Shown here one piece after another: positions 14,941 through 49,982 of a DNA stretch of 64,000 nt. This DNA comes from Trichosphaerium sp. ATCC 40318. Taxonomy: Eukaryota; Protista; Tubulinea. The position numbers were made by a program, and so were the translations under genes. The stretch's first letter is position 1; each line of letters opens with the position of its first letter. Under the pieces are notes generated by a model. It was not told the origin of the DNA. It did no database searches and saw only the letters and a program-made list of their open reading frames with translations. The stretch spans positions 1 to 64,000 of the forward strand of contig JALMLS010000489.1 of the NCBI GenBank assembly GCA_038496445.1, in the 5' to 3' direction.

Positions 14941-17253
14941 TCATTTGAAAAACTTGTTGTTTGGTACCAGAAGTGGTTTCTTTCCTTCTGCATCAATACT
15001 ACACTTAATATCTGGCCTGTAAACTCGATAAATAAATAAATACTTTGTAACTCTAGAAAACACGTGCCTGAAATGATTAAGTGTTGCAACAATACTCTTC
15101 TTATCTTTATTATCCCACCAATACGGAATATGTATTAAAGTCACACCAGCACCTTCAAGATGCTTTTTTTTATCACTATCACTTCTTTGTTGTAAAACAC
15201 TAGGTCCATAGTTTCCTATAACGTCAGAAAAATGATGTTCTCCTAAAGAAACAATAAACAAAAGTATCATTGAAAATAAACAGACAGTTACTTGCAAAGA
15301 ACTTTTCCTCCAAAAAAAAAAGAGGATTGAGCAAACACTCACTATTGTTTTACCTTGGTATTCAATTGCGATATTGAATTTTGGTATAAAAATATCTACA
15401 ATAATCTTTGATTTGTTAACGGCTCCAACTATATCTGTAAGATTACACTCTTCCTTCATCTCTATGTCAGGTAGTATACTTCTCATTGCTGCCAATAAAT
15501 GCCTAAATAAATGATGTGAACTTATTGGAGATTAAGAAAGCCCATACATTTGATTTGTTTTTTTGTTCTTTTCCTGAAACAGCACATTTTGCCATTCGAG
15601 TTCTGGATACATCTTTTTGAGTATCATCTTGTATTTACCATTTTCAGCAAGTCCACCACCGCCATATGCCTTTATATCATTCTTACCTACTCTATGCCAA
15701 TCATGTGGTTCTTTGATGCCAAGAACATCCTCTAGACCTTAAAATAACAAAGAGTATTAGCCAAAACAAAACAGATGCAAATATGTACTCTTCATAAACT
15801 GTATGGAGTTTTCTTCCTTATCCCAGTATCCATTTGGTACTCGTCTATGATAAATTAATCATTTGTGTATAACTACATAACACATAGTGTTAACATACAT
15901 AAACTTTCGTATAGTCCAGTTATATTCAGGGAATATTGCTGCTAACATATCGACAAGAGATCCGTTGTAACTGTATAGAAACAATTAATCACATTTGAAC
16001 TTCTTTAAGCCCTCGTACTGTCTGACAACCCCTGATCCTCCTTTCAATTTGATCTTTTCAATGGTACATTTATACCAATCACTTGAAACCTTATAATTCA
16101 ATGCTTTGGCAATATAATCAAGAGTGTCCCTTTGAACATGACGTTCTCTCCATAATTTCGAGCAAGTTCTAAATTGAGATACGTCCCATGTATATTGTGG
16201 ATAAATACTTGGAAGTGCTTTATGAAGTAACCAATCATACCTTAATACAAGAGATTTGTTAAGAAGAGACTAGTAATTCAAAACGCACTTGATAGCTACA
16301 ATTGTTCCTCCACCATGTTTCCTAACATCCTTCACAGACACATTGTACCAATCAGTGTATAATTTAACGCCTAGAGACATCGCTATTGTGTCAAACTTTT
16401 TCCTTTGATTATCCAAGCTATCCCAATATTGTTTTGGTGCTCTACTACAAAGAGAGTTACAATCAAACACATTTAGAGCATTGATACTTAAAAATACAAA
16501 TTCAAAGACGAACCTGAACCGCCATGGCTGCCAATTGTAATTTGGGTAAATGGTTTCTACTGCTTTAGCAAGAGATTCTTCAAAACTATGACTACTTAAT
16601 TGCAGCATTACAGTAATCAAACTTACTGAGCAAGTACACTATTTCCTCCTTCATGGACAATATCACGTGTATGAACATTGTACCAATCACACAATGTCTT
16701 GATACTCATAATCTCTCCTATACGATCCAACTTTACACTCACAGGCATACCCAAAGGCCACAACGATGCAAGTGGCTTCCTAAAATGTAAACAGAGTCAA
16801 ACGCTTTGTGTATAAACAAAGAGTACTCACTTGAAACGCAATGTTGCCCATTTCTTTTTAGGATAGTTTACAACCAAAGCATCTTGCACGGAATTTTTAT
16901 ACCTTACAAAACCGGTTAGGTGTTGTCTGTCAGTGTGCACGTGACAAAAAAAAGTGAAAAGCACATACATGCTTAGTAGAGCAACCCCTCCTTGTACACC
17001 ATGTATTTTGCTACGCGTTATAGTATAGTAATCGTCTAGAATCATAACTCGCAGTTTTGGTGCGATTGTGCTTTCGAAAAACTGTCGGTGTTCAGTCCAT
17101 TCGCTTTTGTAGTCTGATTTCTGTCGTTTTATTACAATGACGCTGGTGTTTACGCGTTTGTACGCTAATTTAGTTAATGAAGTGTTAAACGTTAAGTTTT
17201 AGTATTCGCGTACCATTTCGGAACGATTTAAACGGTTTTTGAAGAATTTGCAT
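14941..17253 (-). CDS. 'DWY'-repeat protein (five ~68-aa repeats) with C-terminal PD-(D/E)xK / RAP-like nuclease domain; putative mitochondrial presequence
   Basis: Repeat example: PKQYWDSLDNQRKKFDTIAMSLGVKLYTDWYNVSVKDVRKHGGG..YDWLLHKALPSIYPQYTW. C-terminus VDIFIPKFNIAIEYQGEHH..DSDKKKHLEGAGVTLIHIPYWWD. N-terminus MQILQKPFKSFRNAYKRVNTSVIVIKRQK. Confidence 0.75.
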
Positions 17254-17527
17254 TCTATACGACAGTTGTTGTCACGAAATAGTTTCCAAGCGGTGAAAAT
17301 CATCACAACGCGTACCAAGCAACTCAACCAGCTTGTTTACAAAATCACCAACAGCAAAAAAAAAAGCGCTTAACCTAGCAATTGTAGCTTAACAGTACTT
17401 GTAAATTTTGAACGCAAACGCGAAGAAATTTATAGTGACAAGAAAAATAAACTAACCAACATGCACTAAAACGTCATTACAGCAACCCAAGATAAAACAA
17501 AACATTTTTATTTGACATGTCAAAAAT

Positions 17528-18532
17528 TCAAAAGCTACTGCTTCTCTTTCGTTTAATCATATGTTCATTATGTATCTTATGTCCAAGCATATCCGCATGG
17601 CCTGATGGAGAAGGGACCGCACTATAGTGCCTATTGAAACGCTCCAAGTATGGCAATGACTTGAGGGATAGAAAATCATCATAAAATGTGTCAACATCAG
17701 CAATCCGTAATTGTCTCCAATTTTTAAGTATCACAGGTGACAAAACCTTGCCATAGGTTGTTTTAGTCCTCGTTTCCCATTCCCCTTTAAAATAGAATTC
17801 TTGGATATTTGGAATAGCTTTGAATAGCCAAGTCCAAACCTTTACTTGTCTAGTATCATGTAGAAGCATTGAAAGAACTGTTATATTTGGAAATAAAACA
17901 GGGTTTTGTGTTAGGTTAAATGCTCCTCCTTCTATTCTGATGTGTTGAACTTGTGGTGATATAAGTAATAGTTTATATACAGTTGAAGATTCTGTGCCAA
18001 TGAAGTCTATTCGTGTAAGATTTGTCAATGGAACACTTGTTACAGTGCTCAAAATATTTGATTTCTTTCTCGGTGGGGACTTAACTTGTAGCCATTGCAG
18101 AGAAGGTGTTGCTCTTAAAATTTCTTCTAGCGGTATTAGTTCCCCCTTGTTTGTTGGTTGAACAGTCGATACCCTAACCAAAGAAACCATATTTGGTAAA
18201 TCGATATCGTAAACATCTTTGGGTTTAATACTTAACTTTACCATCGGCTTGAGAAGTTTTTGTAGCTGAGACACGTGGGTTGAAGGTATTTCGCAACTAT
18301 TGTATTCTACACACAAAGAATTGTCTCTGTATTCTACTCTTTGCGTAAGGAGGTCTTTAAGAGATACTATAGCTTGAGGTTTTAAATAAAAATGGTTTTG
18401 CCATTCTCTACACACCGCACAAGCCGCTGCACGTGTTCGCAGAGATAAATAATCGCGTAACAAGTAAATTATCAGTTGGCTTGGCTTTAATGTTGAAGAA
18501 TACTTGTATTGAAGATCCGCGTTTAATTGCAT
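17528..18532 (-). CDS. F-box + degenerate LRR protein (intronless)
   Basis: 334-aa ORF. IYLLRDYLSLRTRAAACAVCREWQ is F-box-like. LRR-like units PSLQWLQV, NLTRIDF, PNIQEFYF. Confidence 0.65.
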   Translation of the reverse strand: MQLNADLQYKYSSTLKPSQLIIYLLRDYLSLRTRAAACAVCREWQNHFYLKPQAIVSLKDLLTQRVEYRDNSLCVEYNSCEIPSTHVSQLQKLLKPMVKLSIKPKDVYDIDLPNMVSLVRVSTVQPTNKGELIPLEEILRATPSLQWLQVKSPPRKKSNILSTVTSVPLTNLTRIDFIGTESSTVYKLLLISPQVQHIRIEGGAFNLTQNPVLFPNITVLSMLLHDTRQVKVWTWLFKAIPNIQEFYFKGEWETRTKTTYGKVLSPVILKNWRQLRIADVDTFYDDFLSLKSLPYLERFNRHYSAVPSPSGHADMLGHKIHNEHMIKRKRSSSF

Positions 18533-48748: not shown

Positions 48749-49982
48749 ATGGCAAGTCCTCCGCGTCTACTTTTTTGGCGTGCTATTAAACTAAAACGGT
48801 AACCCGCTATGGACATTATAAGTACCAGCGCATTACTAAGGATTTCGAGGCGGGGTACGTATTTTATGAACTTGGAGTGAATTAAAGAACTTAGTAACAA
48901 TTGTGTAGCCAGAGCCTTAAAAGCGGTCCCTGTACCTCCAAAAAAGCTTAATGAATCCGATAAACGCGTAATAGAGCGTATTGCTAGTAAACTCGAAGTA
49001 AAATTATTAGATGATTGGTACACTGTACGCCGGCGGCAGTTTGACGCGATGGGAGGCAAGTACATTACAGCAAAGTACGTTAACCGCCGACTGTTCTTTT
49101 CTTGGTTAAAAACCAGCTAACAAGCTTCAAGATACGATGGTTCTATTATGGGTGTAGTGCAAATGGCGTATCCTAAGTACCCTTGGGAATTAGCGAAGTT
49201 CAAGCACGTGCCTAGAAACTTCTGTGTTGGGATTAATTTTTTTCTTGGCAGATTCAAAGCTTTGGGTCATTGGGAGTTAGAAGATAATCAAAAGGATATG
49301 TTCTTGGTTGCTGGACAAAAACTTGGCTTTAAGACGATGGATGATTGGTATGGTGTAAAGTCGAAAGACTTGGCTCCAATATGTGGTAGTATATTGAGCT
49401 TGAAGTACTTGATATTTTAATTTTTGTTTGTCATGAAATACTTTTATGTCTGTTTAGATATGGAGGTAGTATTACAAGAGCTCTATCTTCAGTGTTCTCC
49501 AATTATATATGGGATCCAGATAAGTTCTTCTACAGGTTGTTCGTCTATTACAAGGCTTGGATTCTGACATATTGTAGGAGAAAGCGTACTTGGAGCACGT
49601 CTGCACAGATCAAGTTTGTGAAAAGTTTAGAACCCGCTCTTGATATAAGACAAGCATCCGATTGGTATTAGTTTGTTTAAAACGCTGTAGGTATTTATAA
49701 TTAACATGTTTATTATAGGCATCGTGTTTGTTATGAACAAATACTCGATCTTGGCGGAGCTGGAATAGCCCATTATTATCCTTATGTTTTAGAAAAAGTT
49801 TACCCTGAGACTGATTGGAATTGGTCTGCCTTTCAGAAACATCCAAGGTCAAAACAAAGGTACCAAGCTTTTAGAATATACTATGTTATACCGTACAAAA
49901 AAACTGCAAGCTGATTATTGTTTGTAGAGTCTTAAAAACGGGAACCAAAGTTCTATTCCCAAAAAACTCTGTTGTAAATTAG
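48749..49982 (+). CDS. 'DWY'-repeat protein (three repeats, no nuclease domain); putative mitochondrial presequence
   Basis: N-terminus MASPPRLLFWRAIKLKRISRRARALKAV (includes a 14-nt microexon). Repeats LLDDWYTV..GG..YDGSI..AYPKYPW; TMDDWYGV..YGGSI..VFSNYIW; ASDWHRV..GG..VYPETDW. Confidence 0.75.

Follow-up and report, generated by a model that had tools for sequence, protein, structure and literature searches.

Positions 14941-17253 on the minus strand of a 64,000-nucleotide (nt) stretch of Trichosphaerium sp. ATCC 40318 DNA (contig JALMLS010000489.1; "the window" below is this whole stretch) encode a protein of 542 amino acids (aa), in which a basic leader is followed by an array of five DWY repeats and a C-terminal nuclease domain of the PD-(D/E)xK type. 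The best reading of the array and nuclease together is a repeat-guided endonuclease, because of the architecture, the fusions found in relatives and the conserved catalytic residues. Our leading, though tentative, proposal is that this nuclear gene makes a presequence-bearing mitochondrial endonuclease that acts on DNA. Binding of nucleic acid by the array, the specificity of that binding and the nature of the substrate are all predicted.

The coding region starts with an ATG at 17253-17251, ends with a TGA at 14943-14941 and is spliced from 13 exons separated by 12 introns into a single open reading frame (ORF), whose product is colinear with more than 60 full-length homologues. Transcript evidence comes from the contigs of two public RNA-type runs. 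These contigs confirm two of the 12 introns (the first and the last), and none of them conflicts with the exon model; the other 10 splice junctions are predicted, with support from the colinearity with homologues. An initial annotation, made from the letters of the DNA alone, had given the same location, strand and splicing, and these can be kept.

For the repeats, a hidden Markov model (HMM) was built from 139 single repeats, all from other proteins. It matches each of the five copies with an independent E-value between 1e-14 and 1e-25 (Table 1), and the array is thus far beyond chance. The initial annotation had counted the same five copies, and its two consensus strings match the consensus of the family. 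The period is ~72 residues, and only about a quarter of the residues are identical between the five repeats. A tandem-repeat scan of the gene region finds no tandem repeat at the DNA level, which indicates that the copies are old.

Across the 139 repeats, the residues of the conserved core are aromatic and hydrophobic, namely W6, W31, Y32, G43-G44, L48, Y51, Y63-P64, W68 and F73, and positions 13 and 72 are conserved as basic; the median isoelectric point of the family is 9.0. Entropy is highest at positions 36, 40, 45, 49, 50, 56 and 60, which flank the GG turn. These hypervariable positions resemble a ligand-reading surface, although the resemblance proves nothing. The array may read sequence through its variable repeat positions, as the initial annotation suggested, and the one feature that points this way is the hypervariable cluster around the GG turn.

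Evidence on the fold comes from AlphaFold2 models of a 30%-identical homologue (P0018; mean predicted local distance difference test score, pLDDT, 89.5) and of a single repeat (pLDDT 92.4). In these models, each repeat is a compact unit of five short helices followed by a Trp/Pro-rich linker. Helical scaffolds of the PPR, OPR and HPR kind had been cited for comparison at the outset, but the repeat is built differently: with a period of ~72 residues and five helices per unit, it is a compact module rather than a hairpin.

Pfam and NCBIfam searches with the individual exons return no match for the repeats, no reviewed UniProt protein matches the repeat, and the repeat and nuclease profiles find only chance-level matches among PDB sequences. 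A Foldseek search with the single repeat against the PDB and the Swiss-Prot models returns nothing below E 4, and the best score in a wide VIA-align search is Z 4.1, for TetR and the Slx4 CCD, which is too weak to assign either as the fold family of the repeat. There is a weak likeness between the single repeat and helical DNA-associated domains (integrase SAM-like N-terminal, TetR and Slx4-CCD). Weak summed Pfam matches to Myb_Rap1, SAM_TNK and CH on relatives were put down to noise added up over the repeats or to an unspecific helical likeness.

In the ESM Atlas, the repeat superposes on a bacterial DUF4046 cluster, 98% of whose members carry PF13255, with a template modelling (TM) score of 0.78 and a root-mean-square deviation of 1.8 A over 74 of 77 residues. 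It also superposes on giant-virus proteins (a Nucleocytoviricota cluster, TM 0.90) and on amoebozoan proteins, and DUF4046 entries in the AlphaFold Protein Structure Database (AFDB) match the array at E 1.6e-6 and 1.2e-5. Many homologues list precomputed, unverified PF13255 matches; with the Pfam copy run here, the family is matched by none of 70 full-length relatives and by no exon. Judging by the models, the repeat belongs, at a distance, to the DUF4046 (PF13255) fold family, itself uncharacterised; a literature search for 'DUF4046' found no paper. The repeat had been called unassignable to a named family. A name is now available, but it is the name of a family that is uncharacterised in turn.

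The C-terminal domain is matched by an HMM made from 59 nuclease domains, again all from other proteins. It contains D446, E457, Q459, G460, H463, D481 and K484, plus the IPYWWD and RPD motifs, and D446 and E457-x-Q459 align to columns that are invariant in the family. Among the 59 members, D, G and H never vary, and 90% or more share P, E, Y, D, K and the PYWW motif; each of these is present here. The presence and conservation of the catalytic residues argue for an active enzyme, and the nuclease is predicted to be catalytically intact. In the AlphaFold2 model of the homologue, the core of the domain is alpha-beta-beta-beta-alpha-beta, with acidic residues on strands 2 and 3. Residues 403-528 of that model were compared with known structures. 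The best match is a Toxoplasma mitoribosomal RAP protein (Z 10.5), followed by Vsr bound to DNA (Z 9.6), the homing endonuclease I-Bth0305I and the DUF559 protein NGO0050 (both Z 9.4) and the RAP domain of human FASTKD4 (Z 9.3). The PD-(D/E)xK/RAP-like fold read from the letters at the start is borne out, as one of Vsr/DUF559/RAP type.

How far the domain is a RAP domain depends on the level of comparison. At the level of fold, the modelled homologue resembles RAP (PF08373) proteins, in which an array of repeats ends in a Vsr-like PD-(D/E)xK domain. By sequence, the Pfam RAP gathering score is missed: the cut-off is 24.2 bits, of which exon 12 reaches 14.5 (E 0.036), and RAP appears at E 0.1 in one of the 59 homologous domains. 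The closest Pfam family by sequence is DUF2726 (weak, in 38 of the 59 members), DUF559 is found in a few, and all Pfam matches of the nuclease are near or under threshold. The nuclease is thus RAP-like in fold and position and outside Pfam RAP membership, so that the term RAP-like used in the initial annotation applies to the fold and not to the family. By its own AFEYQGxQHY and IPYWWD motifs, the nuclease clade is a distinct subfamily.

The leader also has the character first ascribed to it, basic and free of acidic residues for about 30 aa: there are 8 K/R in residues 1-29, and the first acidic residue is D31. It is predicted to be amphipathic, with a hydrophobic moment of 0.6-0.76 over residues 1-12. 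By composition and hydrophobic moment, then, the N-terminus has the combination typical of presequences. Leaders were compared in 73 homologues that begin with Met and have 20 or more residues ahead of the first repeat. In 60% of these N-termini, residues 2-21 hold at least three K/R and at most one D/E; among windows taken from inside the same proteins, the share is 14%. The leaders also have twice as much arginine and more Ser/Thr. Many of the homologue leaders look like textbook mitochondrial presequences, and such leaders are seen across several protist lineages. Going by its leader, the protein is probably imported into mitochondria.

The family to which this protein belongs is large. A search with exon 7 (73 aa) against 1.84 billion representative proteins finds 2,159 at E <= 1e-3 and 758 at E <= 1e-10, with up to 18 stretches matching exon 7 in one protein, and the family amounts to more than 2,000 clusters at 50% identity. 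The repeat HMM detects 349 of 350 collected relatives, in which the number of repeats ranges from 2 to 25 (mode 4-6), and the same C-terminal nuclease is present in 183 of the 349; a large modular family, as the annotation had supposed, does exist. The taxonomic range is based on the few database entries that bear names: the amoebozoans Cavostelium, Echinamoeba and Physarum, the heterolobosean BB2 and a marine protist transcriptome, beside many metagenomic contigs. Structure searches extend the range to dictyostelids, Tubulinea, Discosea, giant viruses, planctomycetes and Bacillota, and an AFDB protein from a viral metagenome has the full architecture (E 3.7e-21). The window itself holds a paralogue at ~48750-49980 (+), which has about three DWY repeats and in which no nuclease domain was detected.

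Fusions in relatives bear on the substrate. In P0062, P0235, P0029, P0155, P0208 and P0024, the nuclease is followed by an ATP-dependent DNA ligase (Lig E / Chlorella-virus type). When compared with the PDB, the non-repeat tails of P0062 and P0029 find such ligases at E 4e-21 and 2e-12, respectively, and phmmer searches with these two tails find the same ligase domain in the other four. In P0191, a ligase fragment lies N-terminal to the array, and there is no nuclease. P0029 is among the closest full-length homologues of the protein described here. P0235 is one of two Cavostelium transcript isoforms; the other, P0090, lacks the ligase. A ligase gene was also sought in the window, where there is none. 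As for other domains, the DWY-array relatives P0314, P0319 and P0313 have precomputed matches to the HA domain (PF03457) or DUF4379, which suggests more domain shuffling around the array.

The nuclease subfamily, recognised by the motif EYQGxQHY, has 400 confirmed loci in 185,579 prokaryotic species genomes and at least 360 in viral contigs, with tblastn matches down to E 5e-20. In the prokaryotic loci L001, L009, L012, L013, L025, L030, L038, L060, L075 and L076, the nuclease is joined to 2-6 DUF4379 treble-clef zinc fingers, often with CapR-homology regions, and in L017 it is fused to NUMOD1/I-HmuI-like modules; the joining of this nuclease to an array of small modules is thus a recurrent design. 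Zinc-finger or NUMOD1 fusions of the nuclease occur in prokaryotes, phages and giant viruses, and the viral proteins closest to it in structure carry annotations of homing, restriction or Vsr endonucleases. DWY repeats are found with the nuclease in one of the 80 best prokaryotic loci and in none of the 80 best viral loci. The contig of that one locus is clearly bacterial and also encodes a sigma-54 regulator, a histidine kinase and, as a neighbour, Schlafen AlbA_2. Bacterial genes that combine DWY repeats and nuclease are listed in Table 1. One bacterial member is adjoined by genes for a NikA-like protein, a DnaG-type primase/AAA_25 and an N6_N4 DNA methyltransferase, another adjoins a TraG/VirD4 coupling protein, and a third sits in a housekeeping-like context.

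In the mechanism we propose, the five DUF4046-type modules would be held by their conserved Trp/Tyr/Pro linkers in a rigid, stacked array. The array would bind a defined stretch of nucleic acid, its preference depending on the variable residues that surround the invariant GG turn in every module, and would position the C-terminal Vsr/DUF559/RAP-type PD-(D/E)xK endonuclease to nick or cut. The substrate would be mitochondrial DNA (mtDNA), and the nicking or cleavage, directed by site or structure, would serve to maintain, recombine or repair mtDNA; where a DNA ligase is fused, as in some paralogues from other species, it would reseal the strand after the cut. We slightly favour DNA over RNA as the substrate. 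The ligase fusions, the homing- and restriction-type relatives of the nuclease and the bacterial mobile elements make DNA at least as likely as RNA, and the DNA-associated look of the module counts weakly in the same direction. The initial annotation had instead placed the protein in mitochondrial transcript maturation, a role that is not favoured given the DNA ligase in close relatives, the DNA-binding homing endonuclease modules on the same nuclease clade and the mobile elements in bacteria.

Several observations weigh against a mitochondrial, DNA-directed endonuclease. The ligase fusions are rare (7 of about 350 relatives), and none is on this gene. The structure was modelled on the homologue P0018 and not on this protein. 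The nuclease fold is no closer to Vsr than to RAP domains, which act with RNA. The large repeat families of organelles (PPR, OPR, HPR and FASTK) are, to our knowledge, almost all RNA-directed, and dozens of site-specific DNA nucleases in a single mitochondrion would be unusual. The leader is Lys-rich, with KR...KRQK motifs, and could also act as a nuclear signal. Finally, an upstream ORF (uORF, described below) may throttle translation of the main ORF and keep expression low.

The alternative that survives best, possible though doubtful, is a mitochondrial RNA-processing factor, in which the array would read single-stranded RNA and the RAP-like domain would cleave or trim polycistronic mitochondrial transcripts. 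The family would then be the functional counterpart of the OPR-RAP, HPR-RAP and FASTK proteins where RAP proteins are undetected. The layout of leader, repeats and C-terminal Vsr-like nuclease is the same as in RAP proteins, and the many paralogues with presequence-like leaders recall the PPR and OPR families. RAP proteins are found at both ends of the structural scores given above, the Toxoplasma protein at the top and FASTKD4 lower down; the nearest AFDB cluster is named 'RAP domain-containing protein' by UniProt, and exon 12 has its weak Pfam RAP match. Furthermore, the family is expanded in Amoebozoa and Heterolobosea, and a survey in which Amoebozoa and Excavata are without detectable Pfam RAP proteins found none there (PMC8190603). 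Another report describes FASTKD5 as cleaving mitochondrial pre-mRNAs (PMC12242768), which can be counted for the same alternative. On the other side, the RAP threshold is missed, with a single homologue reaching even E 0.1, and the ligase fused in relatives belongs to a DNA-ligase family. The closest sequence relatives of the nuclease have the architectures of DNA endonucleases, the globular five-helix repeat is unlike the known RNA-reading alpha-solenoids, and bacterial members lie in mobile elements.

An unlikely explanation is that the protein works outside the organelle, as a DNA nuclease of the nucleus or cytoplasm that derives from mobile elements or from defence (against giant viruses or other invaders, for instance) or as a domesticated selfish nuclease, with the basic N-terminus acting as a nuclear signal or meaning nothing. 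This would fit the giant-virus relatives (both the cluster at TM 0.90 and the viral-metagenome protein with full architecture), the mobile-element contexts of bacterial members, a nuclease clade typical of homing and restriction enzymes, and the Lys-rich motifs of the leader. The 12 spliceosomal introns and the paralogue in the same window speak for a resident cellular family instead, and Arg/Ser-rich, acid-poor leaders of presequence type recur in the homologues of several protist lineages.

Several RAP proteins in apicomplexan mitoribosomes are non-catalytic structural parts. That the present protein is likewise a catalytically silent scaffold, whose array and nuclease-like domain only bind nucleic acid (as part of a mitoribosome or nucleoid, for instance), is very unlikely: the top Foldseek and VIA matches do include structural RAP proteins of Toxoplasma and Tetrahymena mitoribosomes, and which FASTK members are catalytic is still described as uncertain in one source (PMC12687428), but the catalytic D, E, H, D and K vary hardly or not at all among 59 divergent members and are all present here, the pattern expected under selection for catalysis.

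Returning to the repeat-guided endonuclease, a bolder and quite improbable extension of it is that DWY/DUF4046 modules are an unrecognised programmable repeat for reading nucleic acids. With the hypervariable residues around its GG turn, each five-helix unit would touch a set number of nucleotides, and arrays joined to a nuclease, or to a nuclease and ligase, would be site-directed enzymes that cut, or cut and rejoin, the mitochondrial genomes or transcripts of amoebae and heteroloboseans.

The coordinates of the features are collected in Table 1. Eleven of the 12 introns, which measure 41-111 nt, are GT-AG, and the last is GC-AG. The gap in the RNA contig at this last intron has a 5-nt ambiguity that allows no GT donor, and the intron was therefore read as GC-AG; this splice brings back the conserved RPD motif of the family. 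For intron 4, in-frame acceptors that would give 32 or 35 nt are also present. The length of 41 nt was preferred because it is the only one to yield the family spacing GG-x2-LL-x2-Y/F-x2-S. An intron of 32 nt, which would lead to a product of 545 aa, puts the repeat spacing off the family pattern and was rejected. Upstream of the main start, an ATG at 17303 opens the uORF (17152-17303, -), which has 34 codons, is out of frame, overlaps the main start at 17253 and ends in exon 2 after splicing. Directly upstream of the gene, on the same strand, lies a single-exon ORF of 334 aa (17528-18532, -). An Rfam scan of the gene region gives no match.

Table 1. Features of the gene in window coordinates; the last row gives relatives in bacteria, by locus.
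Feature	Position	Strand	Protein (aa)	Remarks
5' untranslated region	17254-17323	-		at least 70 nt; RNA contig extends to 17323
Leader	17106-17253	-	1-33	spans intron 1
Repeat 1	16833-17105	-	34-102	spans an intron; family repeat HMM, independent E 1.2e-14; most diverged copy
Repeat 2	16516-16832	-	103-177	spans two introns; HMM, independent E 1.4e-21 over aa 120-177
Repeat 3	16171-16437	-	181-253	HMM, independent E 1.4e-25
Repeat 4	15901-16158	-	258-327	HMM, independent E 4.3e-25
Repeat 5	15577-15840	-	330-400	HMM, independent E 1.1e-20
PD-(D/E)xK endonuclease domain, Vsr/DUF559/DUF2726/RAP type (predicted)	14989-15573	-	402-527	nuclease HMM, E 1e-37
Exons 1-7	17253-17214, 17164-16969, 16902-16831, 16779-16627, 16585-16514, 16444-16289, 16240-16019	-		
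Exons 8-13	15970-15899, 15844-15789, 15737-15548, 15502-15354, 15242-15068, 15016-14941	-		
Intron 1	17165-17213	-		49 nt, GT-AG; RNA contig joins 17214 to 17164
Intron 4	16586-16626	-		41 nt preferred
Last intron	15017-15067	-		51 nt, GC-AG; RNA contig skips 51 nt at 15015-15067
Bacterial genes with DWY repeats and nuclease	L161:1348-3006, L162:6001-7446, L003:1792-3525			mobile-element-like neighbourhoods

Organellar gene expression and genome maintenance depend on lineage-specific families of modular repeats, such as PPR, OPR, HPR, FASTK and mTERF. Here, a large unstudied family in Amoebozoa and Heterolobosea, lineages reported to be without RAP, combines a different, confidently predicted module with a RAP/Vsr-like nuclease that appears intact. 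If the array does read sequence, it would add a new scaffold to those that nature offers for targeting nucleic acids, and the family would give a handle on how protists process or repair the nucleic acids of their mitochondria. Even without sequence reading, DUF4046 gains its first functional context, namely fusion to enzymes that cut strands and enzymes that join them.

The design as such, a repeat array with a Vsr-like nuclease and an organellar leader, is known. Literature searches, which included DUF4379 and RAP plus amoebae, found no paper that describes the module, the nuclease subfamily, the ligase-bearing variants or the lineages. PPR-SMR and PPR-DYW proteins, mTERF and TALE are conceptual analogues, with modular arrays, paralogues that vary in repeat number and an optional enzymatic tail, and no relation to them was found in sequence or fold. 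A recognition code is known for PPR and TALE; for DWY modules, such a code is conjecture. PPR, OPR, HPR and TPR repeats are antiparallel helix pairs of 34-40 residues, a description that the present repeat, which matches none of these families in Pfam, does not fit. DUF4046, found mostly in Bacillota, has the same module fold, and the assignment names the module without explaining its function. The nuclease shares its core fold with Vsr, DUF559, DUF2726 and I-Bth0305I (Z 9.4-9.6), and its D ... E-x-Q-G-x-x-H signature sits on the central strands, as in the Vsr/DUF559/DUF2726 type. Proteins that combine DUF4379 or NUMOD1 with the nuclease are similar in joining the same subfamily to a tandem array of small modules; the array consists of zinc fingers or NUMOD modules in place of DWY/DUF4046 modules. 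Closest in layout are the proteins with helical repeats and RAP (human FASTK and FASTKD1-5, Chlamydomonas OPR-RAP and apicomplexan HPR-RAP), which have the same leader, tandem array and C-terminal Vsr-like PD-(D/E)xK domain. These proteins use a helical hairpin of 37-40 aa or a FAST_1/FAST_2 region, whereas the present family uses a five-helix module of 72 aa, misses the Pfam RAP threshold, strictly conserves the catalytic residues and, in some members, adds a DNA ligase.

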